Source: Podarcis muralis (taxonomy: Eukaryota). Taken from it: 64,000 nt of DNA. The translations under genes were made by a program, and so were the position numbers. Under the pieces are notes generated by a model, which did no database searches, was not told the origin of the DNA, and saw only the letters and a program-made list of their open reading frames with translations. Location of the stretch: contig NC_135662.1 of assembly GCF_964188315.1 (NCBI RefSeq), positions 87,296,001 to 87,360,000 of the forward strand. The letters are read 5' to 3'. Shown piece by piece: positions 2,186-28,892 of the stretch (position 1 is the first letter of the stretch; each line of letters starts with the position of its first letter).

Positions 2186-3197
2186 CTGCATAACAGGTGG
2201 TATATAAAAACCTCAATAAATAAATAAACTAGAAAATTAGAATTTGGGGTTGGGTATTGAATATTACTGGGCAAATGGTATGAGTGAAGAATTTGTAAAA
2301 AAAAATAAAAAATAAAGAGGGGGAGCAAGAGTATGCTTCAGTTAGAATATTCCATGTTGCTTTGACTGTAACTTTTCCCCTACCTGCTGAAACACAAATG
2401 TTATTTTTATTAAAAATTAACCACAGTCTTCCAACATCTTTTTAAAATAACCCCCTGTGCTAAAAACTCATAAATATTTACAATTGTTATAAAGCAACAA
2501 CAAAAAGGTAGAGTGTACATTTGATCTCCAGCTGCTTACAGATGCCATTTTTAAGAGAGAGATATATATAATTATCCCATACACTGCATACATCCCACAG
2601 AGCCTGCTCTAAGAGGGGTCATCCATGGATGTGGAAAACAGCGAGAGGCAATTTCCATATGCTCCACTCCTTCTCCAGTGCCGCTGTGATCTGAATCTCC
2701 CATGGCTGCATTTGCCATGTTTAAAAACCGTAAGAGACCCAGCCACCTATATGTCCAGTTTGGTCTTCAGAATCTTTTTCTCACTGTGGGGGAGAGGGAG
2801 GTGTACAAGTACAGTCAGCCTACTAGAAAACTAATAAATCTATTATAAACAGTTTAATAGGTTGTATGACCCTAGAAAGAAACCTTGGATGGGCCTTGGA
2901 TTAATATACTTTCCTTCCTTGGACCGTTGAAAATAAGATGTCATTATAAAATTGTATTAGCTATCCCATGTTATCTTGAAAGGTAATACTCTTTGTAGAC
3001 TTGAGAAGCTATATCTAATAAAATGAAAATTATAAAATAAAGAGGAAATGGGACAATGATTCTATGTTGGAAGTCAGCTAGAAGGTGTGGCTTTAGATCT
3101 TTTTAAAAAGCCTCCCTGGCTAGTTCAGATGCTGCTCCCTTTCTGCTGTGACAGGCTTCATTGCCTGGGGCTCAGGGGCTGAGCTTCAGAAGGCTTA

Positions 3198-3422
3198 CAG
3201 TGGTACCTCGGGTTACATATGCTTCAGGTTACAGACTCCGCTAACCCAGAAATATTACCTCAGGTTAAGAACTTTGCTTCAGGATGAGAACAGAAATTGC
3301 GCAGCAGCGGCATGGCAGCAGCGGAAGCCCCATTAGCTAAAGTGGTGCTTCAGGTTAAGAACAGTTTCAGGTTAAGAACGGATCTGCAGAACAAATTAAG
3401 TTCTTAACCCGAGGTACCACTG
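3198..3422. mobile_element. Tc1/mariner-superfamily MITE
   Basis: Perfect 18-bp TIRs CAGTGGTACCTCGGGTTA / TAACCCGAGGTACCACTG flanked by TA on both sides. A related copy in opposite orientation lies at 13380-13621. Confidence 0.9.
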
Positions 3423-4790
3423 TAATTAGGTAGGGCTCGGAGCCAACAGTTAGGAAGCAGTGAAAATTGCTTCTACACCATGCTGCTTTCTTCTGCAAAG
3501 TGCCCTTTTGCCATAGTTGCCATTGCCAAAGATTCACCATGCACGCTCTGAGTGCCACATGAGGCCAGAGTGGTATATGCCCCCATTACGTTCCATGTCA
3601 CCTGAATGATAATGGAGGGGTGGGATATAGGTCTTGGTCAGGGCCCAGGAGGCAACTGCCTCAGGCGGCAGGATCTCCAGGGGCAGCAGATCTGGCCTCC
3701 AAGGAATGCATCACTGTCGGCAGCGGTGGCTCCCTCCTTGTGGCTCACAAGCTCTGCCCCCTCCTCAGCAGTGTCCCCCATGCCTCCTCCACAGCAGACT
3801 CTTGACAAATAGGAGGCACTGCTGGTCTCCTCCTAACCCTAGGAAGGCCTCCTGGGGTCTTCACCCACCCAGAGTGATTCAGAGTGGGCCTTTGATTCCC
3901 ATTTCAACCATCGGGTAAGTTTGATTTGATCACCCCGTCCCTTTTTCCTGCCCTTCTTCCCAGGCTCTCAATAAATCTCAGTGGAAATGGTGTAATGTAC
4001 GCTACTGTTTTTCTGGGGCAACATTGCACAATAACTGAGTCATGATGTGGACTAAGTTCTGCTACTCAGTAGGGTTCATAGCTGTCAACGTTTCCCTTTT
4101 TTAAAGGGAAATTGCCTTATTCCGAATAGGATTTCCCTTAAAAAAAGGAAAAAGTTGACAGCTATGGTAGGGCTTATGGCCAACCACAGCCTATATGGAA
4201 TGTGCAAGCAGTTCCCATCTCTATGGGGTTCGTCTCTCTGCTCTAGGGCCACCTTTCACTTTCCAAACAGCATTGCTTTCACGTCTGCTTCTTTTCTCTC
4301 TCCCCTCCCCCAAATTCCAGAATGGGGAACAATCATGTTCTGGGCTATATCAAGGGAGTAGGGAGCATCATCCCAAAAATAAATTGCCCTTCCAACTTTT
4401 GGGGTTGGGGAAACAGGGGTTGCCTTCCTGGCTACAGAATGCTGAAATAACATTCCAGGAGTCTGGAAGCAGAGAAGCTATTCCGCTTGCAGGTTAAAGC
4501 AGAAGAATAAAGCTGTTTGCTGCCTAACTCTTCACACCCAGAAGCCCTAGCCAATGTTACCACAGGGCCAGTTAATTCTCTCCCTTAGACTGCCTGTCCA
4601 TTTCTTGCTGTCACTGCTAGGCCCCAATCTGCCCTTTCTAGTGCTTCAAGGACAGCTGCCAGGAAATGCCTGGGCCACAGACAGAAGGATTAAACATTAA
4701 CGGTAACCCTATCACTCTGGTAATGCTATCTGCTTCTCACAGCTCCCATGGGGAAAGCATTAGGCAAATAAGAGCGCAATACAGTCAGCC

Positions 4791-6029
4791 ATGGATGCTG
4801 GGCAGGTGGGTACTGCAGAGGGGAGCCCTGCATGAGCTAGTCAACATGCAGGGCGTTGTAGAGAACACTCTTTTTAGGGAGCTGAGAACTGTTCTGTCTC
4901 CACTGCACCCTGCTCAATGTTTCCATCTTCTGCTAGAGCTCTATGTTGATATTGATGTCCACCAGAATTTGGGACCTGGCTGCCTGGTTGCACATGCCTC
5001 TCCAAAACAGATTCCCAAGAACTGACTCTCACTGGCACCCCAAACTGAGCTGTCTCTGCTGTGTTTCCTTACAGGCTGAACAGGAAGTGCGTGTTCAAGC
5101 AGCTGTGGGAATTCGACAGATACCAGGTATAGTACTCAACAGCTGGAGAATGGGAACCCGCTTTCTTTGGGGATGGCTGCATAGCACCAAAAAACTTTGC
5201 TGTATCCTATTCTACACTATTCCTTTTTCATATTGGCGAATTACATATAAGCAACAATAACATTTAGGGGAAACAGAAACCTTCTCTGCAGCCTACAGTG
5301 AGGAACGACCTCTTCTTAGCAAGAATAAAAATGGCCTTGAGGAGTGACATGTACAGATGTGAGCAACGAGGGACTAGCAGGAGTTGGCAAAAGCTAATTT
5401 TCCTTGTCCCATTTTTATTGATGGCACTTTTTTGTAATAGTAAAGATTGTCTTCCATTTTGACAACCCCTTCCTGCTTTCAGGTCAATGCTGCCTTCTTA
5501 CCATTGCGGGCTGTCTTCTCCTCTATTTCCATATGTGGTGTGGGAATAAATGTCTGTTGCCTTCTTGATCCAAGAATGTCTTTAGCGAGTAGTTACTAGG
5601 TACTGTTGCACTTCACTTCTCAATCCTGTCAATCTTTATTATGATTAGAAAATCTAGCTGAAACACTCTGCCATTGGCCCTAAACCCCTTGGCTTCATGA
5701 TGTCACCTAAAGGACCCAGCGTCCTTCAGAGACCTTTACAGAAAAGGTTGTGCCTCTCAGAGATTCCAGGGAGCCTTTGGGGCTGAGAGATGGACTACAT
5801 GTGCTGAGGCTTCAGGGTTCTTGTAAGATGCTAAGGGGGAAATGGGTGTTCCTAAATCAGCTGCATAACTCTTGATTCAGCAGTTCCACAGCTAACCCTT
5901 TAAAATAGTTTCTCTGCCGCAACTTCCACTTTATCAAACTGCACGGCAATAGTAGGCCACAAGCTTAACACGAGTCAACAGTGTGATTCACTGTTAAAGA
6001 GAGGGGTTCCCCAGGGAAAGCAGTAGGGC

Positions 6030-6076
<47 letters not shown>

Positions 6077-9000
6077 AGCATTCAGACATGCAGCTTTAAA
6101 GTATAAACCTGTACTTAGAAAGCACAGGGCAAAGTGTGAGTGAGTCTTTCCTTGCTCTTAATCTCTCCTGAGATTACAGCCAAAGGCAGCATGTGCTGCA
6201 CATGTTGTCTTATGGAAATCATGTAGACTTTACCAACAAAGGTTTCATTCAGCAAAGGCCACTTTAAAAAAACCTGTATTGCTTTCAGGTTCTGCCCATG
6301 TTATTGCTTTGTATTGATTCTGGCTGGGATACTTAGGAGTCATTTCCACTTGATCTCTTTGTGAATTGCCCCATCCCAGATTTTTCTTCCCATAAGGGTG
6401 GAGAACCTTTAATTAATAACATTATTATTCAGAAATGATAATTAATAAAGTCTCTCCCTGTGCCCATAGGATGCTGAAGAATAAGGTGGCTGTATTTCTA
6501 ATTAGTACTCTTGCTTGATGTTCCTTCCAGGCTCATTGAAACAAGACAGCTTCCTGGTGGTGAACAAAGATTCTAACCGTCTGATATTCATTAGTAAGGC
6601 AGACAAAGGAGTGCAGGTGAGAAAGCTCCCAGAGCAGGGGTACCCTCCAGATATTGTTGTACTCCAGCTCCCATCGCCCCCAGCCAGCATGGCCAATGGT
6701 CAGGAATGATGCTGTTGTGTTCCCTAGCCCTAACCCCATTCAAGCACAGAGGAAGACACCTCTTGGAATGTTGCCAGCCCCTGAGTTCTTCCAGGCCATA
6801 AGGCATTGCCTTATCAGATTCAGAAGACTCACTCTCAGGGCAGTCTCCATCACCTCAATGTCATAAGAGTCAATGGCCCCAAAATAAGGCAGTGGCCCTT
6901 TTAGGCTACAGACAGCTCCTTTGAGCGGATAGGTCCAACTAGTTCTAGGCTAGCCAGCCTTCGGTTGGCTATGGGAGATCTGTGCACAGCTTCTTTCTAG
7001 ACGCAAGATACATTAGCCAGCTTTCTCACAGTGATTTGCCCAAGGTCCTGACCGCATCTGCCTTGTATGTATTATCCCGTGAACCAGACACTGACGACAA
7101 AGAAAGATGGGGAAATTACTGGAAGGATTTGAGAGAGACCTCAAATCTTCAAGCACTAATTGAGCACTGCTGTCTCTTTCCAGGAAGGATGCTTCACCAT
7201 TGATGGAGTCTTCAGTCTGGACACTGGGCAGGTACAACATACCCAGGATATTGTTCTGTGCAGCCCTTGCAATATATAACTTGATGATGTGCTGAGCTAG
7301 GGTGGAACACTTGGTGCACCAATTTTGATTTCTGACATGACAGCTTTGATTTCACAAATGAGAGCTAGTTCTTAGGAAATTTTGAGAGGTTCAAGTCCCC
7401 ACCACCACAACCTAGGGCAGCTGTTGTGGCAGTGAAGTCTATAAATTAATTTTGCACTGTGTGAAGAAATACCTTATTTTGTTTGTCTTTTCTGCCAATT
7501 AGTATCACTAGATGTCCTGAGTTCTAGTATCACGGCAGAGGGACTTTATCTCCACCATGCATAATTTTATAAATTTCCATTATGCATTCCCCGGCCTTTT
7601 TTCTAAGCTAAGCTAAGCTACTGAGCTTTTCTTCCATGTGAAAATGACAAATGTATTAGCATTAGCAGCATAATTTGTTGCAAACATGTTCCAAAATGAA
7701 TTTGGGGGAGGATGTTTTCACTAAATTTTTCAACATTTAATTTGTAAAAAAGAAAAAGAAAAAAAGGTTCATGCTGTACAGTAGGTTGTATTCAGGGAAT
7801 AAACCAGTAAAGAGGGCTTCGTTTTGTCAAGTGTCTGGAGCCCTGGTACCTAACCCAAGGCCTTATCTGGGTTGATATGCACTAATGCTGGGCATGCAGA
7901 TTATCATTTTTGTCCTTCACTCCAGGACAAGCTCTTCCTGGAGCAGCTGCAACCTCTGCTGGACATGGTGCCTTTGGGCTACAGTGTGTCCCTGCTGGTT
8001 TGTGAAGCCCATCACGACGGAACCCAGACACAGATTCAAGCCTTTGTCCAGAAGGTGAGGGAGACTTCTATACTGTAATATGTAGTCATTATGGAATGAA
8101 ATTATGAACAGGGGAGGATGATACTGTAGATGGCACCTGACTCTTAGAAAGAAGGATGCTGCCTATGAGAGCTTTGTTCTTGTTGTTTAGTCGTTTAGTC
8201 GTGTCTGACTCTTCGTGACCCCATGGACCAGAGCATGCCAGTTACTCCTATCTTCCACTGCCTATCGCAGTTTGATCAAACTCATGTTAGTAGCTTTGAG
8301 AACACTGTCCAACCATCTCGTCCTCCGTCGTCCCCTTCTCCTTGTGCCCTCCATCATTCCCAGCATCAGGGTCTTTTCCAGGGAGTCCTTCTCTTCTCAT
8401 GAGGTGGCCAAAGTACTGGAGCCTCAGCTTCAGGATATGTCCTTCCAGTGAGCACTCAGGGCTGATTTCCTTCAGAATGGATTGGTTTGATCTTCTTGCA
8501 GTCCATGGGACTCTCAAGAGTCTCCTCCAGCACCATACTTCAAAAGCATCAATTCTTCAATGATCAGCCATGAGAGATTACATGCAGTTCATTCCCCATA
8601 ACACTGGGGTGGGGAACCTCAGGCTCAGGGGCTGAATGTGGCCCTCCAACGTTCATCCCCAGTCCAAACCCCCCACTGGCCCAATAGCACTTTGCCAGTC
8701 TACACGTGAAAGGCTTCAATTCCATTGCACACTGAGAAACTCACCACAAATCAGCTAAAAGGGAGGGCAGCTCAGAAAACACCTGATTGCATTGTGGGCT
8801 GATAATGACACCATTGGGCTGCTTTGTAATAGGTGAGCAAATAAAGTACTGAACAACAATTCCAAAAGGATGCAAAAGCATCAGTTGTAAGCAGCCACTT
8901 GTGTATGCAAGGCATAAACTCTGATGAGTTGCATTTTTCTTTCTTTCTCTCTCCCATTTGTCTTCAGGTAATAGAATCTGTCTTGCAAGAAACTAGCCCT

Positions 9001-12000
9001 GCCAAAAATAGTACTCAGTACCTCCAAACCATCACCTTTGTCCAGGTGAGCATACCTTGCATAGGGTGGCACCAGCTTTATGCACTCAATGCTCTTCCAT
9101 AAAAACATTCTTGTAAGTTGCCTGTGTCCTCATTGCTGTGGCCCATGGGCCACTGTCCCAAGTATCTGTTTGTTCTGCAAGCCATGGAAGCTGTATTTTC
9201 ATTTTGACTGATGTGACTATAATAGTTTTTGCCCTTTCGGGTTTGCCATTGCCATTTTCCAGGGTTCATCCCAGTCACAGCTGCATTGATACTTTTCTCA
9301 CATCCATCCCATTTCAGATCTACACAGATGGAAAGGCTCAAGACCTCCTCAGCCCCAGAAGTCAAGTCCTGCAGGTGATGGACCTCCCTCCGCTGGGGCT
9401 GTAAGCATCCAATTCCAAGGCTATGGTGTTGGATTGGTCTTTGTTGAGGAGGAGAGGAAACATTAGCACAGAAAACAGAGAAGAATCTGGGATTTCACTT
9501 TTTATTACTCAGAGATCAGGGAGAATTTCACCCAATGGAACAGAATATGACAGGGCTGTTCAACAGTGGAATGGACTCCCTTGGGAGGTGGTGGACTCTC
9601 CTCCCTTAGAGGATTTTAAGCAGAGGTTGGATGCCTATCTGTCATGGGTGCTTTAGTTGAGATTCCTGTCTTGCAGAGGGCTGGACTAGATGACCCTTGG
9701 TGTCCCTTCCAACCCTACAATTCTATGATTCTGTGAATGGCTGGGGAGGGTATGCACAAGAGGGTATGACTGGATGGTATGCACAAGAAATTTAGTTCAG
9801 ACAGATTACAGTTTATCTAAGACATAAGGAATGTGGATATGTTGTTGGTTTTCTTGTCCTGGCACTTTCCCTAGGAAAATCTGTGTTTTACCACTGAATC
9901 GGAGCAAACAGCAATCGGGTTTTTCCAGGAAAAGTGCCAGGGTAAAAAAACAACGCCCACCATCATGCTTGACCATGGAGCTGTAAAGCTCGGACCTGTG
10001 CCTGGAAAGGGTGGCGTAAATTCTGGATGAGCCCTGAGTTTCTGAGGTACCTCTAACTGCCTAATTAAGATGCCTCACACTATCAACTCTCTCCATCTCT
10101 CTTTAGGATGGTAGAAGAAGCGACTGAAGTAGTTGTGGCCAATTCACAAGCTGCCACTCATTGCTACTTGCAGGGGATGTCGTTGCACCAAAGTTATTTG
10201 CAGGAATCTTTCCAGAAGCAGCACAAAGCAGCCATGTAAGGGCAGCAGAAAGGAAAGTGCTCTTTTGAGGGGAAGAGAGCAGCACACACAGCTAACGCTG
10301 CTCAAGATTCTGACATTCTCTCTGATGCACCTTCCTGAACTTGGAGATCTCCACTCGAGAGGCCGAATATTCTCCTCCTGCAATCTGTGCCACTTGAGTG
10401 CCCCTCAGAAGTGTACTGGCCAGATTTTGGCCTTGCTCACATATGTGCAGCTCATAAGCTGCTTGCTTGCATCATGGACGTGCAGTTTAGCTTCAGGAGC
10501 TGCACAGTCACTGGTACAATCACTACTCTTTGGTGGAAAGTTGAGACTAAGTCAGCCCACACACTTTTTCCTGGTTCTTCCTAGGCCAGGGGTGGCCAGC
10601 TTGGTGCCCTGCAGATTATCTGAATGAGAACTTCCACCAGACCCAGTCAGCATGGCCAATTAGGATGGCAGCTGTAGCCCAGAACATTGGGAGGGCACCA
10701 CATTGGCGTCTCCTGCACTAGGCCTTTGGCTTCTGTGACTTACGATCAAAGATTTGCTTTTTAAAGCATCATCATGTCTTGCTGAACCCCAAGGCTATTC
10801 TTACTCATGATGACACAAGAATACTTCCCTGCCAGTCCTTTCAGTTTGAGGAAGGAAAGAGCTAAGAACTTGCACAATGCCTGCTAGGAACGCCCCAGGT
10901 TTTACAGGAATGCCACAGCCGTTTCACGTGTTTTTAGAATGTACACAGCAGCATCCCAGCAGTGAGCTGCCCCTTTAACTTATACACATTCAACCTGAAG
11001 TTTAACAGACACCCGTCCATCCAAAGTTGTCTCTTCTCTGCACATTTGGGACCTTGCATTTCCAGGGTTCGGATCTTACTAATTCAGTCATGGGGCAAGA
11101 GGTGGGGTGCTATTGCTTGCTGGGACTGTGAGGGAGAAGGGCAAGGGAAGCACTAGGTTGGAGGTGAGGAGCACAGATACACACACACTAGTGCCCCCCT
11201 GCTGCCACCAGCCCACTGCCTTCTGCACCTGGCCTTGGAAAACAGTCATGCACTGCACTATAAAAAGAAAAAATCTGATCTGGGAGGTAATCAGTAGCTG
11301 AAGCTGTAGCAGTCCTGGTATGCCAAGGAGTTCCAGAGTATACCAGTCTGTCTGGATGAGGGATGTTGCTTAGGGAAGCAGTGTAGGATGAGGCACATCA
11401 ATATCTGGCAGAGACCTTTGCTTCACCCGACAGCAGAGCCGGCCCAGGGTCAAGGAATGGCACCATCAGGCAGTTTGTTGATCCACTGCCTATCATGCCA
11501 CTAACTCTATCTGCTTGCTGGCTTGTTTATGAGACACCTCATAAAATAATTTGTCTAGGGGGCTGTACATATAAAAGAGAACAAAAATGTAACAGTAAAA
11601 CCACACTAATAAAACCAAATTAAACTTAAGAGAATCAATCTCCAAAAATAGCACAGCTGTATTAAAAATAACAATTGCCCTTGCAGGTGAGAAAGGAAGG
11701 CAGGAAAGGAAGTGGCAGCCTTTTGTCCAAGTGACTCCAAATCTTTGCCTGGCTTAGAGAGGCACACACATTCATTCATTCATTCATTGACTGCTCTTTT
11801 GTGCAAATCTGGTATATATTAAAAACTTGTATTTCATTATTTTTCTTTTAAAAGGGGTGTGTTCATAGCTGCAAATGCATGTTTGGATACCCACAAAGGA
11901 ACTCAAGTGTTCCTTTGCATGTTTGGATACCCACAAAGGAACTTAGCAGCGACCCACATACATTTTTAAAACTACTCCTTTGTGCAAATCATATACAGTA

Positions 12001-15000
12001 TGCATATGCATGCAAGGAAATGTAAAAAAGGGGTTGTATTAAATGCTGTGCTAGCAGAGGTCCACTGGTGCAAGAGGACTTCTGTTTCCTCTTCCCTCTC
12101 TCACCCTGCCCCCAATGTGCCCTCGAAATCTGCTGTGGAAGGTTCTGCAACCCTCCAGAGCTGATACTGAGGGTGCAGAGCGTGCTGGAAGTGACAGGAA
12201 AGGAAGTTCCATTGCAGACACAGAAGTCCCTTGCACAGCAGAGCTGCAGTGTTGGTTTCATTCCTCATACTTGCATGCATGCCAGACCTCAGCTTCCAGA
12301 AACTTACAGTGAGTGGGGAAATACTGAGGGGAGAAGGCAACACAAAACCACACAAAAACCTCCCATCAAGCACCGTCCAGGAAGCATCAAGGTATATTTT
12401 GGAAGTATATACTTGAGTGCACTCATATGTGGGCAAAGGTGCACATATGTGCACATGGAAACAGCAACCCATGTATGCATTAACACCCTAGTCTGGACGC
12501 AGCCCAAGTCATACATTGGTCCATATAGCTTAGGGCTGTTTGCTCCATCAGGATTCCTGATGCAGGTTGGAAGAAGGCCTTCCATTATCCTTTCCCTCAC
12601 TGCCATTCCAGAACATTGCAGAAGCAGAGGCGAAGACAGCACTGGAAATTACACAGTGGAGCATTAACAGTGAAACTGAGTTGCACAATTAGGACAACAG
12701 CTTTATGTAAAACGTAAATGACAATGGCCAGATACTGGTAGTGGGAGCTTAGAGATGGCAATTCTCACCAATCTACCCAGACCATCCTAACCTTCTCTTT
12801 CCTACCTTCCCCCTGAGATGTGGCAACCTCTTCACCATCACCATGGAGACAAAAGCAGAGGGTGGTCAGGGGCTTCAGCGTGCTGCTGTCAAGATCTTTG
12901 AGTTTTCTGGAGGGAATGAGCAACACTCAGCTGATCCGTGAGTATGGGGTGAGCCTCAGTAGAGGTCAAGCAGATTATCAGAGAATGCGCAGGAAGCACA
13001 AGGCCTCCTTTTCTGGGAATGTGTAGCCCCTAAATCTTTGGTACTGGGGCACAGTCACCTTCACCGCTCAGCCAAATGAATTCTGCTTTAAGAAATGTGC
13101 TTATTCTCTGCCTGCTGGCTGATCTGTTCCTTGCTGCTCCTTTTCTGTACAGTTTTTTGCCTCTTTTCCGAGCTTCATCTGCTGCGGCACTTCCTGCTGA
13201 CACAGAGTTCCCCTGCTGGATGCTGAAGCATTTGCTGGAAGAAAATGCCCTCACCTTCCTGCTGTTGTGCCTCACCCTGCCAGGTACCACAATTACACGT
13301 ATCGTTTTCTTTTTCTGTATGATTTTGAAGGAAGGTTGTTTTTGCTGTAGCTCGTCAAGCACTGTTCCCTTCTCAAGTACAGTGGTACCTCGGGTTAAGT
13401 ACTTAATTCGTTCCAGAGGTCTGTTCTTAACCTGAAACTGTTCTTAACCTGAAGCACCACTTTAGCTAATGGGGCCTCCCGCTGCTGCTGTGCCGCCGGA
13501 ACATGATTTCTGTTCTCATCCTGAAGCAAAGTTCTTAACCTGAAGCACTATTTCTGGGTTAGCGGAGTCCGTAACCTGAAGCGTATGTAACCTGAAGCGT
13601 ATGTAACCCGAGGTACCACTGTACATACATGTTCCATGATCTGATTGTGAGGCTTGTTAGTTTTTCTCCAAAGACCTGAAAAAGGCTCTTGTGCCTGAAG
13701 TAGACAATGTCTCCATCCATTAGATGGGGAAAGGATACAGTACTCTGCTTCTGGGCGCTTCCTTACCTCAGGCTTAAAACAGTTTAATATTAATCTTGGG
13801 ACCCTGAGGATTGCAGTTCTGTGACAGGGAACTAAGGTTCTTATCACTTTACCAAACTACACTTCCGTGAGTAATATCAATTTATTATCAATTTACAGCA
13901 TTTTCATACTCCCCATTAACAATTCATTCTCTAGGCGGTTTGCATTATTCAAAAAATATTGTGCTTTGAATAAGTAAGGTAATTTTTTGTTCCTTGTTTC
14001 TTTTATTCTGGTGTGCTGAGCTGATTCTGCCTCTTCACTGCAAAAGGGAACCGGAGAAACATCTGTCTTAAAAGCCCTAACATTTTAAAAACTCACAGGA
14101 AGTGACTGTTTCAACCAATGTGAACCATGGTTATGCAATGCATTTTTTCCACTCTGTCTTATAAGCAGCAGTGGTTGTTTTTCAATGGAATTGGTAAGAA
14201 AAAACATTGCCACAAATACATAGCCCCAACATTTACTCAACCACTCTGAGGCCAAAATATTAGCAAGTACATAGCTTGGATTTGTTTCTTCATAAAACAT
14301 ATAGGGCAGATGAATTCTTAACATAGGTTGCAGCTTGAATATAAAACCAGCCTGCTTCTGCACTGCAGAATTTAAAATACTATAAACAAGCTAGAATCTG
14401 TTTGCTCCTCCTTGAAAAGCCGCAGTTTGAGAATTCAAAATCACCAAACTGGGACTGTTGTGTAGGGTTTTAATATTTATCCTTTAACTAATGAGCAGTG
14501 AAAAATGCTAGCTAGATATTTTTTAGGCCAATGATAAGATTTCTTTGCCTGTTGAAAGCATGAAGGAAACAGCGCAAACCAAGTGGGAAGTGGCTGCAAG
14601 TGTATACAGGTAATCTTCACAGCCAGGCTGAATAAACGCAGCCCAGCAGGTGGGTTCTAATGCACTCTGCTGCCACTTGCACGAGAATAAAACACTGCAA
14701 TTCTCACACAAATAACGGTCTGTGTAAAAGAGTTTTAAAACTTTACTACAATAGCTTTATAAAACAAAAACTACCGCCATGAAATATAAAAATACAACAT
14801 GAACATAAAAGTAAATACATATAAAATAACATCAAAATAAAACAAGTTTAAAACTTGTGGTTGTAGGATAGTTATCCTTCTCGTGTTGGTTCAGATCCAG
14901 CACAAGTATATTGCTTTATTTTATTAGCAGGAAAGGCAGTTAGTCTCAGTAGCCCCTGCTGGAAACTGAGTGGCACCTGTTTAATCTGGAAACAAAATTT

Positions 15001-15008
15001 TTGCAGAG

Positions 15009-15052
<44 letters not shown>

Positions 15053-18000
15053 AACTTAGTTCTTACCTTTCCTCTGCTCTGTCTAGGAACAGTCCACATT
15101 TTAAAGCACAGGGTCTGATTGCCCTTTTGCATTTCTTTTTTGCTCTGGAGCTTCCTCTGCAAAAACCCGCTTTTTAAAGCTCAGTTGGAGCAAACAGCAA
15201 TAATGGAAAACCTGAATTGATGTCCAAGTGCTAAAGAGCAGGGTTTTTTTGCAGGGAAAGCTCTGGAGAAAAACCCACACACAACCAAATGAACACTTGG
15301 ACATAGAGCGTTTAAGCATGGACCTGTACTTGGAATGAGCAAGGCAAAATATGTGTGGATAAGCCCACAGTGTGTCTTTATCAGAGATTTAAAAGAGAAT
15401 GATGTTTGCCTCAAGTGGTGACTACTGCTCTAGAGGCCAACCAAGAAACCCAGATGTTACAAAGTCTGGCTGAGAGTTTTGTGGGGTTTTTCCCAGATGC
15501 TTCTGGAGAAGAGATACGGTCTGCCATCTCACTGACTGAACAAGTGAGGACTGTGACAAAGAAAGTGGCACCAGTCCATTGGGATCCCATGCATGAGGCT
15601 CAGAAACGAAGAGAGGTGATAGGAGAGCTGAGAGCCCAGCTGTCCTTCAGGAGTCGGGTGGAGCAGGAGAGCATGCTCAGCCAGTTGGAGAGGGTGATCA
15701 AGGAGATACAGGTAACTGTGCAGCATCAGCATACAGCGATACCTTGGTCCATTCCGGAGGTCCGGTTGTAAACCAAAACAGGTTGTAACCCAAGGCGTGC
15801 TTTTGCCAATGGGGCCTCCAAAAAAAATATTGGTTGTAATCCAAAGAGAGAGAGGTTGTAATCCAAAAAACAGGGACACACACTTCAGGGTTTGACGTGC
15901 TTGTAATCCAAAATGGTTGTAATCCAAAACGGTTGCAAACCAAGGTACCACTCTAGTTGGTATGAACTCTGCATAATGAAGTATTTGCCAGAAATCTCAT
16001 GCAGCCAGAGTTGAAAGGCCATGTTTGAAGCACAATATTCTGGACTCGCAGAAGACTGGGCAGTTGACTGTAGAATCTCTCAGGCACTCACAAGAATGAT
16101 CTGCATTTAATGGACAGTTATCTGAATTAAAGCCTAAATAAGTAGAACACAGCCACCCATAGAGCTCTGCTGGATCAGACCAACAGAGCATCCTGCCTCC
16201 CAAAGGGACCAGCCGGATGCCTCCAGGGGTGTCAGAAAGAGGAGCCCTCTACTGTTAGTGCTGCCTCGCAACTGGTATTCCATGGGATACTGCCCCCATG
16301 TGCGAGAGTTTCACATGGCCATAATGACTAATAGTTGATACAGGACTTGACAGCTGTGAACATGTCACATTGTATTCTAAAACCAAGTTTATTTGCTATA
16401 TAAGTACATCTTGTGGCAGCAAGTTTCATAAATTAATTAGGCACCAATTAGTTTCATGGGTGGATTCCAAATTTTATTATAATGAGAAAAACTTATGTTC
16501 ACTTTCTCTACACCATGCATAATTGATAAAACTCTGTGTATCTGAAGAAGTGTGCATGCACACGAAAGCTCATACCAAGAACTAACTTAGTTGGTCTTTA
16601 AGGTGCTACTGGAAGGAATTTTTCTTGTTTTGACTATGGCAGACCAACACGGCTACCTATCTGTAACTGATAAAACTCGAGTGTGTGTCAGCCCCTGTCC
16701 CTTAGATTCCCCCCCCCCCCCTATGTTATAAAACCTCGAACACATTAGCCTTTCATTGTAGGCAAGGTGCTCCAGTCCTCCCTGATAATTTTGGCTGCTC
16801 TTTCCTTCACTTTTCCAAGTTTACAACATCCTTTTAGAGATGGGACAACTCAATTTATATGCCATGTTCCAATTGCAGCTGCACTGTAGGTTTGTCTGTG
16901 GTCATTGCAATACTGAAACTCAGTTTTAGTCTCAGTCTGTTTCCTAGTTATCCCTAACATTGAATTCATCTCACTAAACTAAATTAAAATTAAAATTAAA
17001 CTGTAATATTACTATTTTCTGCTTATAAATAGATATATAAAAGATTTTGAAAAATGTTTAGCAATTTAAAAACAAGTTAATTTTGAAAATGCTAATCATT
17101 GACCAGTCTCTTACATTTTAATTATGGTTTCTAACCTATGTGGGGGGTTCCTCTCCTTAATTGCACTGTTCCCCCCCCCCCCGAAAATCAGTAAAGTCGT
17201 ACCTTGGATACTGAAAACCTTGCGACTCAAATGTTTTGGCTCCCAAACAACGCAGACCTAGAAGTGAGTATTCTGGTTTGCGAATGTTCTTTGGAACCTG
17301 AATGTCTGACGCAGCTTCCGTGGATTCCGATTGAGTGCAGGAAGCTCCTGCAGCCAATCAGAAGCCGCACCTGGGTTGCTGAACGTTTTCGGAAGTCGAA
17401 TGGACTCCCAGAACGGATTCCGTTCGACAACCAAGGTATGACTGTAATAAAAAAAATGAAAATTCAGACATTTAAAAAAATCTGAATGAAAAGTGGTTTT
17501 ACAGTAAATTATATTTCTTTAAATCAGATCAGAACATACGATTTGGCATCCTGGATCAGGTCAGTTCTGTTTCCAAAGAGGCCAGTCAAGTACTTCTGGG
17601 AAGCTCAACGGTGGGGAATGGAGGCAGAACTCCCTGTGTTGTTTGTCCCCAGCTGCCCCTGTACTCCAAGTTTTTAATTTAGCTGTTATAGTGATTCAGA
17701 TGCTACATTTTACTGGCTTAGTAGTTGACAAGGAATCTTATGATGCATTCCATGAAGTGCTTTTGAAGGGATATCCCTTCTCTGGTTTTAAAAAATCAAG
17801 GGGTTATCTCACAATCTCTTAGGGTACACAGTTGTGGTAGATGTGCATTTGTGTAGGTTGAGGTACTTTCCAAAGCTCTGAGCACAGGGCTGGCAAAGCC
17901 TTCTTTCTCTCGTTCCCATCAGCTGACGGGGAGGGGAGAAGAAGGCTGCATTTTGCAAACATCAGCTCCATGAGGGAGAAGTCCCTTTTAGAGCTGATGC

Positions 18001-18240
18001 CTGCAAAAACCCAGGGCTGCTTGATTTGGCTTCGTGCGCAGATTGGCTTGGAGGCTGGAGGTTTCCCCACCCCTAGTCTAGGAATAGCATAACCACTGGC
18101 TTAGACTAATCAGTAGGTTGAATATGTTCCATAATTGAGTGAACTGGTAAGACAATCCTGGTCCACCTGTTGCTTTGTGTTGATTTCTGTCACCTGGCAG
18201 AATGTGGCAAAAATGTAAAGTACAATGGGCTGCCCAGAAC

Positions 18241-18291
<51 letters not shown>

Positions 18292-21200
18292 AATTTATAT
18301 ACTATCATTCATCCATAGGGCGGTTCACAACAACATTTCTGTGTCTCCATGTTGCAAGAAATTTCAGATAGGGTTGGCGCTGTGGGTAAAACCTCAGCGC
18401 CTAGGACTTGCCGATCGCATGGTTGGCGGTTCGAATCCCCGCGGCGGGGTGCGCTCCCGTCGTTCGGTCCCAGCGCCTGCCAACCTAGCAGTTCGAAAGC
18501 ACCTCTGGGTGCAAGTAGATAAATAGGGACCGCTTACCAGCGGGAAGGTAAACGGCGTTCCGTGTGTGCTGCGCTGGCTCGCCAGATGCAGCTTGTCACG
18601 CTGGCCACGTGACCCGGAAGTGTCTGCGGACAGCGCTGGCTCCCGGCCTATAGAGTGAGATGAGCGCACAACCCTAGAGTCTGTCAAGACTGGCCCGTAC
18701 GGGCAGGGGTACCTTTACCTTTAGGGGTTGGTTCGAGTGTGTGTGCATGTGTCCCTATGCGAAGGATGCTGGCAGGAGAGAAATGAACTGCACTTTAAAA
18801 CTCACATTGTGCCAACTCAGGGCCAGTCCATCCATGAGTCAGCTGCCTCAGGTGGCAGAATCCAAGGGGCACCCCCATGGGCATGCCTCCCCTCCGTCCC
18901 CGCTGCCAGAAAAGCAAGGAGAAGCGCCTGTGGCAGCTTCCGGCTTCCAGAAGATCTTGGAAGCCACTGCTGCCATTCAGATTCATTGAGTCCTTCTGAA
19001 TGGCCATAGAAACTAGTGGAGATGGTAACCATTTGCATGGTTTTGCTTGCTAACTGTTTGGCTATTACAGCAGGGCTGGGTGGAGGGCTCCAAGAAGCGT
19101 GCCCACAATAGCTGTAGACTATTTTGAGGCTGAGGAATTGGGATCAACTGTTTTTAAGGTTCTGAAAAGCCAACGCTGGAAGAAAAAGAAAGAGGCCTCA
19201 GCATATGAAGCAAAGGATACTTCTCCTGAAGGCAGAGTAAGTACTTCTCAGGTATTTCAGCTTATCAGACCCACCCTGTAACCTTAGGGGAATAAATGTT
19301 CCTCTCTGTGTGAAGGGGGTTCAAGTTAGAGAGAATTCTGTTAAGCTACCAGTATCATCGCCACTCCGTATTTTGAATCACTTGACTGTGTTCCACTTCA
19401 GGGTAAAATTACATCAGATATGGATGATGGGGGTGAACTTGGGAATCAACAAGATGATACACGGCAGGACAAAGAAACATCAGGTTTGAAAACAATTCAA
19501 GGCCGGAATTACTCTGTACCTATCTGGAGGTGAAACAGCTTGATAAATATATAGATAACTCATTGATTTGTAGGATAAATGAAACGGTGAGTGATCTTTA
19601 AACCACAGGACAACAATAAAGGCATGAAATAGATAAACCATCCAAAGGCCAGGATGAACAGTTGCAACCTAAGTTATCTGCCAAAACATGTAAAGTGCCA
19701 GGCACACTCCTATGAGAAAGGAGTTTCATAGTTTGGGGGCTGCCACAGATAAGACCCTGTCATGAGCCATCACCACCCTGAGCCTCTAAAGGTGGCAGCA
19801 CTGCCAAAGCTTCCCCCATTGATTTCAATACCCAAGCTGGCACATATTGGGGGAGGCACTCCTTCAGAAGTTTGGGGTCAATGTTATTTAGGGATTTATA
19901 CATTAAAATAAGCACCTTGAATTGACACAATTTTCAGGATACATGTACTATGAATCCTTTCTGCCATGTCAGACACCATCTTGGCTGCTGCACTCTGCAC
20001 TAATTGTGGCCTCCAAACCATCATCAATGGCAGCTCCACATAGAGCACATTGAAACTGTCAGTAGCCTGTCAGCAGCCTGTAGGCTACTGGAGCATGGAA
20101 TATAGTGTCTCAGAGATGCTGTAGCTGGTGAAACAGCTGTAGCTGAAAGTAGGCCTAGCCACCCCGGCCACATGGGATCTTCGTTAACAATGGTGGATCC
20201 AAGAACAACTAACAGGTCACCACAACACCTCCCAGATTCAGGAAAGCAATCACACAAAATGCTAAGAACTAATAATTCACAAGTGCTAATTCATAAAGTT
20301 CTGCTGCAGAGTACTGTATATAAGAAGCAAGTATTAGGAGATAATGAACTGAATGCTAATACAGCTGCAGTTGAGATCACAGCCTGATATCAATCACACC
20401 TGACTCACCCAGGTCTACCTGGCTGTCATCACCCTCCATTCCCCCGCCCCCATGGACCATCTCTGGCTACAATCTCCACTCATGGGGCCCTGCCTGTGAA
20501 TCGCCCAAAAGACCCTTTGGTATTGCCCTTTCAGCTCCTACAGGAAGCAATCAAGGGAAAACATGAAGTGTGGAAAAGAAATATGGAGAGAGAGATGGTT
20601 TTACAGTATAAAGACCTGTGTATGTAAACAACACGCTGTATGGCAAGACGTACTAATATAAATCGGGTATCTTTATATGGCGGGGGGCCCCAGGAATTGG
20701 TACATTTTATTTCACCATACACAGCAAGACATCCCCTTCCTTGTGTCTAAATATTGTCTTATTCCTCCTTGCTACTAGCTTTCTTTCATACAAGACTTGT
20801 TTCTGACAGGAGGTGGCAGCATCCCAAAGATCCAGCTTGAGCAGGTTGGTGTACTTCAAAGTGCCATGGAAGACAAACCTTTCACTGCTGCAATGCACAG
20901 AGCCAGAGACTTGAGCGAGGCAACCAAATCATCCAGCCCTGTAAGTGACGTGTGGGAGTCTCAGACCATGGTCTGTGCCTGAATCCAAGTCCTCAGAAGA
21001 CTGGGAAGATTTGATTTCACCACCAGCAGTGAGATTTTTCAAGTGCAATGCACTTGAATTGCTTGTGAATGTAGCAGGGGATCCTGAGTCTACAGTAGCT
21101 CACACCTGCATCATGGAATATGTTCCCTCAATGTAGACCATTTTAATAATTGCCCATAGAATACTGAAAGTATGTGAACACTTCAACAGCTTCTCCCCTA

Positions 21201-23461
21201 AACACTTGTGTGAACTACTTTTAACTACAAGTAGTTGCATGCTGGGACGCGGGTGGCGCTGTGGGTAAAAGCCTCAGCGCCTAGGACTTGCCGATCAGAA
21301 GGTCGGCGGTTCGAATCCCCGTGGCGGGGTGCGCTCCCGTCGCTCGGTCCCAGTGCCTGCCAACTTAGCAGTTCAAAAGCACCCTTAAGTGCAAGTAGAT
21401 AAATAGGGACCGCTCTGGCGGGAAGGTAAACGGCGTTTCCGTGTGCTGCGCTGGCTCGCCAGATGCAGCTTGTCACGCTGGCCACATGACCCGGAAGTGT
21501 CTGCGGACAGCGCTGGCTCCCAGCCTATAGAGTGAGATGAGCGCACAACCCTAGAGTCTGGCAAGACTGGCCCGTACGGGCAGGGGTACCTTTACCTTTA
21601 GTTGCATGCTAATTGAAACGTAATATGAACAGAGGCAGCCACACACGGCATGCATGGTGATTTCCAGGACATCCGTTCAACCCCACCCCATTCAATGGTT
21701 TGTACCAGGGACATGAACGTGGCCACAGCGTCATAGACAGCCTCCAGCTGTTTGCGTTTTTAAGTAGCAACCACATGGCTCTATGCACGTAAAAACTGGA
21801 CCTTAGAAACAAGGGCCCTGGCTTTCTGTTTTTTCCCAATCCTGTAGCAGGAAAAGCTTTGCCTGATAATGTTTTGCATAATTCTTAAAGGCACAGGAGG
21901 GAGCAGAAACAGCCCCAGACCACAAATATTTCATGTGCATACTTTATGTAACTTAATGCACTCTTGCAAAGAGATTGAGCTGTATGAACAATTAAAACCA
22001 GAGAGTGGAGATTTGCTTTGTGAGCACTTATTGCAGTACTTTGGACTGTCTTCCTGCGCTGCTCTTTTTCAGAGCCTGGTTGGTGAGCAGCACCAAGACA
22101 CAAAGGGGAGCTTCTCTCAAGCAAAAACCCGGTGGCAGGTTCTTCAAGAGCAACACCATCTCCTGATACAACAGGAACTTTTGAGAATGGAAGAGGAGCT
22201 GGCAAGGCAAGAGGTGAATAGTTCCTGTCTGTGATGGCAGGAGACTAACTTATCAGCTCCTTGAGGAAGCAGACTGTGTGTGGGAGAGAAACATACAGCA
22301 AGGGAGGGCAGATGAGCCAAGGGCTTTCCCACCAATCACACAATGCTGGAACCAGTACCAGGAATTAACATCGTAACTAAACAAATTCCAAACCTCTGTT
22401 TTATCTGTTCCATAGTCTGCAGTCCCACAACAACTCATCTGAAAGGTTCTTTCTCTTCTCAAATTGCAGCTTCCTCCAGGCCAGCAAGGAGCCATGCTCT
22501 GGCAGAAAGAAAAGTCTTTGCTGATTTTGCGCATGGAGGCATTGCAAAGAGAACAGGCAGAAGCAGAAAGGGATCTGGAGGAGCTGTACCAAGAATGCCA
22601 GCGAGAAACTGAAACACAAAAACAACACATCCTGCAGGTCAAGAGAGCTGTCAGTTCAAACTCATCCTGGGGAAGGGTCCTTCTGAGTTTCAAACCAGCC
22701 ATTGTTTGGTAGCCCCTTTGAGATGGCAGGTTTAAGCTCAGAACTAGCTCTTTTGTTTCATTGTTTGGAGGCTCAGTGGGAACTTTCAGATTCAGGGAAT
22801 CTTTAGGAGGGACAGACCTCTAGTGGCAGCATCAGATAAGGGCTTCACTTGATTGCGTGAGAGAAACAGCAACCCTCTGCAACATTAGAAGTTTGAAATA
22901 AATATCAATATAGCTGACAGCTTAGCAGCTTGCCTGAAGGACTAAAACACGTGATTCCAATGGCATAACCTCCTAAAGAGCCCAATTGATTTTTCTTTTT
23001 TTGGAGCTGGAGCAAGAAAAGTCTATGTTACAATAAAAACCCTGCAATTCCTTTATTTATTGGATCACTGGGATATCTCTCCATATATATACTTGCTCTG
23101 CAGGGCAGCAGTAGAGAGCACAGTTTCAGTTGTCAGGCCAGGCTATTTCCTGTTGAATGTGTAAGAGAATGGGAGAGTTCATGCCTTTCCATGCCTTGAC
23201 CTCTCTCTTTCATCTACTAAAAGGCTTGTTGAACTTCCTCTACAGGTATTCCAGGCTTATAGGAAACATGCTGAAGAGCATATAGATGTCCTCGAACAGA
23301 GATATCGAAAGCTGCTCCAGGAGTCCCTTCAGGATGCGGTTCTCCTTTCCACTCAGAACCAGCAACTACAAGCTCAGAAGCAACTGGGCTACATGGAGAA
23401 AGCCACCCAGACTGACTTCCAGACCCTTACGCAGAGCCACGAGAGAGCCTCCCCATCCTAA
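4791..23461 (+). CDS. Uncharacterised kinesin motor-homology plus coiled-coil protein (degenerate kinesin), 17 coding exons, 633 aa; probable orthologue of mouse E230025N22Rik
   Basis: Manually spliced exons: 4791-4805, 5075-5126, 6531-6616, 7184-7231, 7926-8054, 8968-9045, 9318-9400, 10107-10235, 12818-12937, 13153-13283, 15497-15711, 19159-19236, 19402-19483, 20810-20940, 22073-22213, 22470-22637, 23246-23461. All introns are GT-AG, all phases match, and the total is 1902 nt with no internal stop. Kinesin scaffold motifs occur in order: [20 protein letters not shown]...[84 protein letters not shown]. Start GCCATGG is a strong Kozak context. Exons 1 and 12-14 are less certain than the rest. 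Confidence 0.82.
6031..6074. repeat. (GAAA)n microsatellite
   Basis: Pure tetranucleotide run. Confidence 0.95.
8178..8560 (-). mobile_element. BovB (RTE-clade) LINE 3' fragment
   Basis: Minus-strand translation [41 protein letters not shown] is the BovB RT C-terminus. The characteristic end GTCGTGTCTGACTCTTCGTGACCCCATGGAC is present. Confidence 0.88.
9545..9735 (+). mobile_element. CR1 LINE 3' end
   Basis: [30 protein letters not shown]2 terminus, then GGACTAGATGACC...CCCTTCCAAC and an ATTCTATGATTCT tail. Confidence 0.85.
13380..13621. mobile_element. Tc1/mariner-superfamily MITE (same family as 3198-3422)
   Basis: TIRs CAGTGGTACCTCGGGTTA / TAACCCGAGGTACCACTG, TA flanks, internal sequence shared with the 3198 copy in reverse orientation. 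Confidence 0.9.
15009..15052. repeat. (TAC)n microsatellite
   Basis: Pure trinucleotide run. Confidence 0.95.
15734..15953. mobile_element. Decayed Tc1/mariner-type MITE
   Basis: Ends CAGCGATACCTTGG ... CCAAGGTACCACTC resemble the CAGTGGTACCTTGG TIR family; internal GGTTGTAA(T/C)CCAAA repeats. Confidence 0.65.
16538..16575 (+). ncRNA. Minimal type I hammerhead ribozyme motif (Penelope-like element terminus)
   Basis: GTAT-CTGAAGA-A-GTGTGC-AT-GCACAC-GAA-AGCT-C-ATAC: 4-bp stem I, intact CUGAnGA and GAAA cores, stem II, palindromic AGCT in place of stem III, CUC cleavage triplet. Confidence 0.75.
16538..16670 (+). mobile_element. Penelope-like retroelement terminal fragment
   Basis: Hammerhead motif followed by TTAGTTGGTCTTTAAGGTGCTACTGG, a terminal sequence I recognise from reptile Penelope-like repeats. 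Family assignment is from memory. Confidence 0.55.
17193..17444. mobile_element. Tc1/mariner-type (Tigger-like) MITE
   Basis: Inverted ends AGTCGTACCTTGG / CCAAGGTATGACTG with TA at the right end. Confidence 0.65.
18244..18290. repeat. (ATT)n microsatellite
   Basis: Pure trinucleotide run. Confidence 0.95.
18371..18722 (+). mobile_element. Sauria SINE
   Basis: tRNA-like head TGGCGCTGTGGG...GGTTCGAATCCC, body shared with the copies at 21244, 49540 and 58022, ACCTTT tail. Confidence 0.92.
21244..21600 (+). mobile_element. Sauria SINE with target-site duplication
   Basis: GGGACGCGGGTGGCGCTGTGGG head, (ACCTTT)n tail, flanking duplication GTTGCATGCT. Confidence 0.93.
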
Positions 23462-24626: not shown

Positions 24627-24976
24627 AAGAAGGTAAAGGGACCCCTGACCGTTAGGTCCAGTCACGGACAACTCTGGGGTTGTGGCGCTCATCTCGCATT
24701 ACTGGCCAAGGGAGCCGGCGTACAGCTTCTGGGTCATGTGGCCAGCATGACTAAGCCGCTTCTGGCGAACCAGAGCAGCACACGAAAACGCTGTTTACCT
24801 TCCCGCCGGACCAATACCTATTTATCTACTTGCACTTTGACGTGCTTTCGAACTGCTAGGTTAGCAGGAGCAGGGACCGAGCAATGGGAGCTCACCCCAT
24901 CACAGGGATTCGAACCGCTGACCTTCTGATCGGCAAGCCCTAGGCTCTGTGGTTTAACCCACAGCGCCACCCGCGC
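24627..24976 (-). mobile_element. Sauria SINE (different subfamily, minus strand)
   Basis: Reverse complement of the head (CACAGCGCCACCCGCG) and tail (AAGGTAAAGGGACCCC). Confidence 0.9.
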
Positions 24977-27920: not shown

Positions 27921-28892
27921 CTATTTGATTCCATAATAAAAGTAAACAGCGAAGCTAATCAGCAAAACAGAAAGGAAAAAAAAGGTGGTTAGATGAAGAC
28001 CAAATAGGAGGACAGAGAGCAAAGCATTAACCATAATAGAGGAGGAGATCACAAAGAGTCTAGTGATGTTACTACTGTGCTTCATGACCACAGACATTAT
28101 CAAGCCATTCAAGGCTTGACTCACAATAATTAACAGAACCCAAAATGAGAAACCCTCCAGGAACCCAGCCCCTGAGCTGCTTGACAGATGGATGATTATG
28201 TTCAGCAAAACACCAAAAAAGTAGAGAAATGCATTTTGGAGGTTAAGAGGCAGATCCTGGGTCTTCAAGACAACTTCAGTGTAGACTGCTGAAAGGCCAG
28301 AGATCAGGCAATATAGAAAGATCAGCACTAAGCCAATGGGGGTGATGTGCAACTGCATGTCAGAAGCAGGCATGTGCTGTGGGTCCTGCAGGCCTCCATA
28401 TGTATAAAAGGCTCCAGCAGCAATCAACAAGAAAAGAGCTAGCCACTTGCGGGCAGTCAGTCTTTGGTGCAAGAATATGCTGAATAGGAGGGCGGTGCTT
28501 CCAATTTTCAAGTTGCTGAGCACTTGGAAGGTACTAGGATCCATGAACAGCTGCAAATGAACTACTAAGTTGTTGTTGGCTGCATAGAGCAATGCCGAAA
28601 GAGCAAAGGGAGCAGCATGATGCCATGACACAGATAGCTTTTGTTGTCCACAGCCCCAGATCATCAGGAAGACTAGTGAGAGCATCAACTTGGTTAACTC
28701 AATCAAAACCACCACAGAGGAGGCACTGAATGGGATCTGGCCATTTTCTTTACAGAGAGTCAGGAGTGGTGCATGGGAGCCATAGATAAAAACAGACAAG
28801 ATCAGCATCAGCCCCCATCGGATTTTCCCAAGTACGACAGCAGCAGCTGGGCTGACCCGGCTATCACCAGTACAAGTGTTGTCAAATAACAT
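27921..28892 (-). CDS. SLC35A4: Probable UDP-sugar transporter SLC35A4, 323 aa, intronless CDS
   Basis: Hallmark segments YGSHAPLL, APFALSALLYAANNNL, MDPSTFQVLSNLKIGSTA, LHITPIGL, VMKHSSNITRLF. First true ATG is at 28892; the ORF-track start at 28925 is a TTG lying in acceptor-like sequence. Confidence 0.96.
   Translation of the reverse strand: MLFDNTCTGDSRVSPAAAVVLGKIRWGLMLILSVFIYGSHAPLLTLCKENGQIPFSASSVVVLIELTKLMLSLVFLMIWGCGQQKLSVSWHHAAPFALSALLYAANNNLVVHLQLFMDPSTFQVLSNLKIGSTALLFSIFLHQRLTARKWLALFLLIAAGAFYTYGGLQDPQHMPASDMQLHITPIGLVLIFLYCLISGLSAVYTEVVLKTQDLPLNLQNAFLYFFGVLLNIIIHLSSSSGAGFLEGFSFWVLLIIVSQALNGLIMSVVMKHSSNITRLFVISSSIMVNALLSVLLFGLHLTTFFFLSVLLISFAVYFYYGIK

Follow-up and report, generated by a model that had tools for sequence, protein, structure and literature searches.

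A tetrapod protein family with a kinesin-fold domain lacking the ATP-binding motifs, encoded next to SLC35A4 in Podarcis muralis

Findings

We analyzed a 64,000-nucleotide stretch of the genome of the lacertid Podarcis muralis (NCBI RefSeq assembly GCF_964188315.1, contig NC_135662.1, positions 87,296,001 to 87,360,000 of the forward strand; hereafter the window) and found that it contains, between a CD14-like gene and SLC35A4, a 17-exon gene that is real, expressed and maintained by selection, and that represents in lacertids a family found across the tetrapods. Profile comparisons and a structure model show that the encoded protein has an N-terminal kinesin-fold domain at about residues 1-320. 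None of the lineages checked has the ATP-binding motifs of this domain (P-loop, switch I and switch II), and by its sequence the motor is catalytically dead. We consider it likely that the protein is a non-catalytic scaffold with a kinesin fold that dimerizes through coiled coils.

The gene had been described as hidden in a prediction made from the letters of the window alone (hereafter the original prediction). It is indeed invisible as a unit among the open reading frames (ORFs), yet RefSeq predicts an 'uncharacterized protein LOC...' in P. muralis, P. raffonei, Lacerta agilis and many other species. Since it is already predicted in the annotations of sister species, the gene itself is not new; it represents an old and uncharacterised variant, with a dead motor, of a kind that is well known.

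Reconstruction of the gene

Using a 98-residue piece of the largest exon as a query against 1.84 billion representatives, we recovered 19 relatives, several of which match PF00225 above threshold, and tblastn of these relatives onto the window returned 14 blocks. The gene was then rebuilt from these homologue blocks, splice sites and RNA joints, leaving the exon list of the original prediction unused. This yielded a single ORF of 633 residues (1902 nucleotides) on the forward strand between 4791 and 23461, with AG/GT boundaries at all 16 introns, and thus independently reproduced the claimed 17 exons and 633-residue ORF from an ATG at 4791 to a stop ending at 23461. The exons, with the evidence for each, are as follows:

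4791..4805, + strand: exon 1 (coding part), residues 1-5, MDAGQ; ATG followed by a GT donor.
5075..5126, + strand: exon 2, residues 6-22, beta1 region with a remnant of the RxRP motif; homologue tblastn, and a 52-nt exon in the Lacerta and Rhineura models.
6531..6616, + strand: exon 3, residues 23-51; homologue tblastn, Lacerta model and squamate mRNA proteins.
7184..7231, + strand: exon 4, residues 52-67, region of the kinesin FxFDxVF motif; homologue tblastn and kinesin profile alignment.
7926..8054, + strand: exon 5, residues 68-110, alpha1, beta3, dead P-loop position and start of alpha2; homologue tblastn and profile alignment.
8968..9045, + strand: exon 6, residues 111-136; homologue tblastn and Lacerta model.
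9318..9400, + strand: exon 7, residues 137-163, DGKAQDLL and start of the L8 motif PPLGL; homologue tblastn and Lacerta model.
10107..10235, + strand: exon 8, residues 164-206, beta5, alpha3 and switch I equivalent; tblastn and orthologue alignment.
12818..12937, + strand: exon 9, residues 207-246, beta6, beta7 and switch II equivalent; tblastn, Lacerta model and RNA word share.
13153..13283, + strand: exon 10, residues 247-290, short alpha4, acidic L12, alpha5 and beta8; tblastn, Lacerta model and RNA word share.
15497..15711, + strand: exon 11, residues 291-362, alpha6, neck-linker-like stretch and neck coil; homologue sequences.
19159..19236, + strand: exon 12, residues 363-388, with the basic patch KSQRWKKKK at 19165-19191; homologues (...ELQ followed by VLKSQRW), donor in RNA joints.
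19402..19483, + strand: exon 13, residues 389-415, acidic disordered linker, a cassette exon; RNA joints 19236/19402 (runs X1, X2) and 19483/20810 (X2).
20810..20940, + strand: exon 14, residues 416-459, linker; RNA joint 20940/22073 (X1, X2, X3).
22073..22213, + strand: exon 15, residues 460-506, start of the tail coiled coil; RNA joints and tblastn.
22470..22637, + strand: exon 16, residues 507-562, tail coiled coil; RNA joints 22213/22470 (X1, X3) and 22637/23246 (X1-X3).
23246..23461, + strand: exon 17, residues 563-633 and stop, tail coiled coil and C-terminus; RNA joints.

The same plan is found in other squamates. The reconstructed protein shares 98.4% identity with the P. muralis product LOC114601426 and, over its full length, 94% with L. 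agilis LOC117049488, and the RefSeq product of L. agilis, placed on its own locus, has 17 exons of equal lengths except for exon 13 (6 nt longer). The Rhineura model also has 17 exons, with exons 1, 8, 9, 13 and 17 differing by 3-27 nt and the others of the same length. A Logan transcript contig from another squamate carries a contiguous ORF of 614 residues. Its protein and a second one derived from squamate mRNA, likewise from Logan, are colinear with the window protein over all junctions from exon 3 onwards, apart from a single one-residue gap at junction 15/16. Lacerta, Elgaria, a turtle, an owl and Hyla all share a start of the MDAGQ type.

Two acceptor choices were settled by homologues. 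The acceptor of exon 11 is at 15497, because homologues join ...CLTLP directly to DASGEE; this join, found in all of them, rules out the alternative at 15416, which would keep an alpha6-like stretch. Likewise, the join of ...ELQ to VLKSQRW in the homologues rules out the exon 12 acceptors 19074, 19129 and 19135 in favor of 19159.

The original prediction had taken the matching phases across the 16 junctions as evidence of an intact gene. This argument proved weak because phase-compatible GT-AG chains are abundant by chance: with the same ATG and stop, a naive search yields thousands of them, in 8239 combinations of exon number and length. It is homology and RNA that validate the chain instead, and the gene is indeed intact. 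Gene finding from splice scores went astray, both unaided and after homology was given a bonus, and returned incorrect chains of 17-21 exons.

At the 5' end, the RefSeq product of P. muralis differs from our model: its LOC114601426 model uses other 5' exons, the first 44 residues matching two blocks of the window at 81-88% identity before continuing into exon 2, with the MDAGQ exon skipped. These blocks are probably alternative 5' exons, or exons of the untranslated region, reaching towards the CD14-like gene:

2751..3917, + strand (span): two possible alternative 5' exons, at about 2751-2798 and 3843-3917; P. muralis RefSeq product.

An ATG at 4666 opens an ORF of 119 residues (4666-5025, + strand) in another frame, overlapping the MDAGQ start; if the transcript begins upstream, it would serve as an out-of-frame upstream start. 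At the 3' end, an AATAAA lies at 23846, downstream of the stop, and RNA contigs extend past the stop to 23499, the end of the stretch compared.

Transcription

Contigs assembled from same-species RNA (runs X1-X3) contain the GT..AG joints 19236/19402, 19483/20810, 20940/22073, 22213/22470 and 22637/23246, thereby confirming the last five of the 16 predicted junctions, and several samples from two studies contain spliced RNA. Further upstream, exons 9-10 make up 54% of a stretch whose words occur in RNA runs from two studies at a share of 0.37-0.53, as would be the case if the RNA contained the exons alone.

One X3 contig joins exon 12 directly to exon 14. Loss of the 82-nt exon 13 shifts the frame and leads to a stop at codon 423, and such a transcript would encode a head-plus-neck-only product or be a target for decay. 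In one X2 contig exon 15 ends at 22190 and is followed by nine other letters (CAAGTCAAG) before exon 16 (22190-22468); either allelic variation or an artefact of assembly may account for this.

In run X22 the exons received no depth from the raw reads, which covered only copies of a short interspersed element (SINE), with about 12% of the run sampled; tissue or sampling may explain this. The SINE-like repeat is about 349 bp long and has five copies, 79-95% identical, at 18375-18723, 21254-21600, 49550-49895 and 58031-58377 on the + strand and at 24630-24969 on the - strand. Two of them lie within introns 11 and 14, where they attract enormous depth in both RNA contigs and reads and give rise to spurious joints between the two intronic copies.

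Selection

Against the Lacerta orthologue, the ratio of non-synonymous to synonymous substitution rates (dN/dS; Nei-Gojobori method, NG86) is 0.27. The comparison counts 36.5 changes of each type, synonymous and non-synonymous, and a binomial test rejects neutrality with p = 7e-8; dS is 0.093, similar to the intron divergence of 0.063. Over deeper pairs, among four squamates, the ratio ranges from 0.23 to 0.34, significantly below 1, so that the gene is not a pseudogene. By region it is 0.18-0.39 in the motor, 0.11-0.25 in the tail and 0.27-0.70 in the linker.

These values bear on the possibility that the locus is no functional protein-coding gene but a transcribed relic, in decay or without function, or that the gene model is mis-assembled. 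Such a reading could appeal to the fairly fast evolution of the family for a kinesin (about 30% identity between the Lacerta orthologue and the mammalian proteins), to the dN/dS above 1 reported for E230025N22Rik, which belongs to this family (see below), in hares (PMC6065068), to the contig that skips exon 13 and shifts the frame, and to the bare exons in X22. However, a relic would hardly retain complete ORFs on the same 17-exon plan in distant squamates, orthologues from frogs to mammals, constraint of the above strength and spliced transcripts. We therefore hold this explanation to be highly improbable.

A kinesin-fold domain

Structure prediction and Pfam comparisons used as a proxy the 94%-identical Lacerta protein (P0023). 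When a profile built from 46 orthologues was compared with the PDB, it matched 122 distinct kinesin chains over positions of about 10-305, that is, from beta1 to alpha6, with a best E-value of 9.7e-21. Likewise, the AlphaFold2 model of the Lacerta protein, built from the family alignment, retrieves kinesin motors from the PDB in a Foldseek search (E = 2.5e-19; TM score normalized by target 0.7-0.79). Both comparisons bear out the kinesin homology that had been claimed. With PF00225 the outcome was mixed. Distant orthologues exceed the gathering threshold of 29.3 bits (Hyla 65, axolotl 61, Gavialis 49 and Pelusios 42.5 bits), whereas single stop-free pieces of the window give no kinesin match in Pfam, because the exons are too short and diverged, and neither do the closest lacertid proteins.

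In the AlphaFold2 model a motor-like domain (residues 1-320) has strands at the neck-linker position (311-319) and is followed by helices at 321-373, a region with a predicted local distance difference test score (pLDDT) below 50 at 381-466, and long helices at 464-627. This agrees with the proposed layout of a motor domain to about residue 320, a neck and coil, a linker and a C-terminal coiled coil. The sequence has an acidic head, with a pI of 5.0, and a basic neck, which carries the KSQRWKKKK patch. We predict that a strand resembling a neck linker leads into a basic neck coil, followed by a disordered, acidic linker (about 381-466) and, towards the C-terminus, a long and highly conserved coiled coil (about 467-620).

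The scores single out no nearest kinesin family: kinesin-1, KIF4, KIF13B, kinesin-8, KIF15 and KIF1A score alike, which agrees with the inconsistent automatic names. The comparison with N-terminal kinesins (kinesin-1, -2, -3, -4, -5, -8 and -12; profile E-values 1e-21 to 1e-14) shows the same beta1-alpha6 fold followed by neck linker, neck coil and stalk; the window protein differs in having lost all ATP-binding motifs and in its shortened L11. Two chains of the mouse sperm central apparatus structure 9ijj, at Foldseek ranks 3-4, were considered as the mouse orthologue and rejected; they are other kinesins, since the Mus spicilegus protein matches no PDB sequence.

Loss of the nucleotide site

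Alignment with the kinesin profile and with orthologues places two of the nucleotide-binding elements as follows:

8001..8024, + strand: P-loop equivalent, CEAHHDGT, against kinesin GQTxxGK[ST]; kinesin profile and orthologue alignments.
12900..12920, + strand: switch II equivalent, EFSGGNE, against kinesin DLAGSE; kinesin profile and orthologue alignments.

The degenerate P-loop can be seen without the full reconstruction, as exons 1-5 are readable straight from the sequence and already have CEAHHDGT, not GQTxxGKT, at this position. Switch I (NxxSSRSH) is replaced by a variable, gapped stretch of the QKQHKAAI type. Across a 20-species alignment spanning frog to mouse we found no GxxxxGK[ST], SSRSH or DLAGSE.

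In column conservation, against a value of 0.64 overall, the indel-bearing pocket loops (P-loop 0.51, switch I 0.47, switch II 0.57) and L12 (0.52) are low and the linker is at 0.47, while the peaks are the PPLGL motif of L8 (0.86), alpha5 (0.75), alpha4 (0.73), alpha6 (0.72) and the tail coil (0.70-0.72). Within the motor domain, conservation is lowest in the pocket loops, which drift as fast as the disordered linker.

It could be argued that the protein is still an active, if unusual, kinesin that binds nucleotide by non-canonical motifs, given that the fold and the neck-linker-like element are kept and that axolotl has faint remnants of the motifs (GKDSPEKT and DLQG). The complete lack of a Walker A lysine/serine pair, of SSRSH and of DLAGSE among the aligned species, and loops that carry indels and drift like disordered sequence, speak against this, and we regard it as very improbable.

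Predicted function

On the scaffold interpretation, the protein would be unable to hydrolyse ATP or to walk, and its coiled-coil dimer would act as a scaffold. The dead heads would be static modules that bind by way of their conserved L8/alpha4/alpha5 face, the one turned to the microtubule in kinesins, and the tail coil would bind partners. In sauropsids, LC8 would additionally clamp the C-terminal end of the coil, where we found a candidate motif:

23396..23419, + strand: EKATQTDF, candidate LC8/DYNLL-binding TQT motif at the end of the coiled coil, residues 613-620; motif match.

The LC8 consensus is [D/S]K x [T/V/I] Q [T/V] [D/E] (PMC3078936). Comparison with LC8/DYNLL clients shows that EKATQTDF fits it at K(-3), T(-1), Q(0), T(+1) and D(+2), with E rather than D or S at position -4, and that its KATQT core is the same as in Bmf, EDKATQTL (PMC3078936). 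As in clients with (K/R)xTQT beside a coiled coil, the candidate motif ends a dimeric-looking coil, in sauropsid orthologues only: it is kept in squamates, turtles, crocodilians and birds and is absent in amphibians and mammals. The AlphaFold2 model continues the helix up to 627, yet the block-mean pLDDT is 64 at 611-620 and below 50 from 621.

Several observations weigh against the scaffold interpretation or narrow what can be built on it. The acidic head, the charge of the alpha4-L12-alpha5 stretch (2 K/R against 5 D/E) and the poorly conserved L12 argue against canonical microtubule binding, and the conserved residues of L8, alpha4 and alpha5 are for the most part hydrophobic, and their role may be no more than to stabilize the fold. 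For microtubule binding by the heads, the conserved L8/alpha4/alpha5 face would speak in favor, and the acidic surface and drifting L12 against. The structure model is that of the Lacerta protein, predicted from 46 orthologues with a mean pLDDT of 72, and the closest lacertid proteins (P0023, P0060 and P0058) fall below the PF00225 threshold. Direct same-species RNA joints cover the last five junctions only, junctions 1-11 being supported by orthologue models, squamate mRNA proteins and the RNA word share. Mammals and amphibians lack the LC8 motif, which therefore cannot be the core function of the family. The scaffold mechanism itself is what we infer from sequence and model features.

The foremost rival explanation comes from yeast, where Vik1 and Cik1 are motor-homology-domain proteins that act as non-catalytic partners of Kar3. 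By analogy, the dead head would sit on the microtubule lattice while the neck or tail coil heterodimerizes with an active kinesin and tunes its attachment. Vik1/Cik1 likewise join a kinesin fold without a nucleotide site to a coiled coil; moreover, the best conserved elements here, L8, alpha4 and alpha5, form the microtubule face in kinesins, a basic patch follows the neck, and the predicted overall architecture resembles the heterodimerising kinesin-2 proteins KIF3A/B/C. On the other hand, the domain is C-terminal in Vik1/Cik1, whereas in the window protein it is N-terminal (residues 1-320) and has a neck-linker-like element; its acidic surface and unconserved L12 argue against microtubule binding; the likeness to KIF3 concerns the general layout only, with a root-mean-square deviation above 30 A over the full length; and the present data indicate no partner. 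We consider such a role rather unlikely.

Another comparison is with KIF26A/B (kinesin-11), ATPase-deficient vertebrate kinesins that are much larger, have a recognisable motor sequence and bind microtubules. The present family shares with them an N-terminal kinesin domain, in vertebrates, that has no motor activity, but it is short and far more degenerate.

We tentatively raise the possibility of an unclassified pseudokinesin family of at least tetrapod age that stands outside the standard KIF catalogue. Its pocket would have died before the split of amphibians and amniotes, and its head might be a static docking module that regulates an active motor or a microtubule-based structure, coupled to LC8 in sauropsids, making it a vertebrate, N-terminal counterpart of yeast Vik1/Cik1.

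Phyletic range and annotation

Predicted orthologues come from many lizards, an amphisbaenian, turtles, crocodilians, birds (emu, owl, chicken and a passerine), frogs and axolotl, and sauropsid RefSeq models named 'uncharacterized protein LOC...' share the family, the 17-exon plan and the neighbours of the window gene. Mammalian orthologues are wide-ranging (lemurs, macaques and rodents) and include the product of the 'Riken cDNA E230025N22 gene' of Mus spicilegus. The link to the latter runs through a bat protein (P0055), which matches the window protein with E = 4e-26 over residues 29-287 and the M. spicilegus product with E = 4e-143; furthermore, motor, neck and tail align together in one 46-sequence alignment, and Atlas groups these clusters together. 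The mention of mouse E230025N22Rik in the original prediction is thus supported at the level of the M. spicilegus gene of that name. The mammalian proteins are further decayed, with no precomputed Pfam kinesin match, with deletions in the pocket loops and without the TQT motif.

A search with the Hyla protein for a fish orthologue or for the nearest active paralogue recovered anuran orthologues only, its reach being limited. The 42 related-protein matches include many lizards, turtles and crocodilians and no snake protein, perhaps owing to loss or to limited search reach. The protein had been proposed to be conserved in vertebrates; its conservation across tetrapods, from frogs to mammals, holds, and the wider range is unsupported because only tetrapod orthologues were found.

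Automatic names are contradictory, with KIF17, KIF3A, KIF4A and kinesin heavy chain on some orthologues and 'uncharacterized protein' on most. No paper in the searched literature studies the gene or assigns it a function, and papers naming E230025N22Rik do so only in gene lists, as expected of the unstudied gene that had been proposed.

Genomic neighborhood

The order CD14-like LRR gene, kinesin-like gene, SLC35A4 and DUF4535 is shared with the Lacerta and Rhineura loci, and the first three, named as flanking and flanked genes in the original prediction, keep their order in sauropsids. The leucine-rich repeat (LRR) gene has an ORF at 510-1871 (+ strand) for a 453-residue protein with a hydrophobic C-terminus; it matches TLR2 ectodomains (C-terminal half) with E = 6e-50 and mammalian CD14 structures with E = 5e-25, the latter over its N-terminal part only. 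On the other side lie a nucleotide-sugar transporter ORF at 27921-28925 (- strand; PF04142, E = 6e-39), which is SLC35A4, and upstream of it on the same strand a DUF4535 ORF at 29509-29763 (PF15054, E = 2e-9), which looks like the upstream-ORF microprotein of SLC35A4. A transporter ORF with an upstream DUF4535 ORF constitutes the SLC35A4 arrangement.

Farther along the window, a stop-free piece at 45944-46582 (+ strand) contains the start of a PID/PTB domain (PF00640, E = 3e-7) and fits an APBB3-like neighbour. An integrase-core (rve) remnant lies at 53294-53995 (+ strand), scoring 32.3 bits against a Pfam threshold of 32.6, and a run of 135 N at 61152-61286 is an assembly gap or a masked stretch.

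Implications

To our knowledge, the catalogue of vertebrate kinesins is usually treated as complete. The family described here is a further kinesin-fold gene, held under purifying selection from frogs to mammals despite the loss of its ATP-binding motifs. The names KIF17, KIF3A, KIF4A and kinesin heavy chain are wrong for it, and one family name should replace them. Beyond nomenclature, the family offers a natural experiment on what use a kinesin head can have without motor chemistry.

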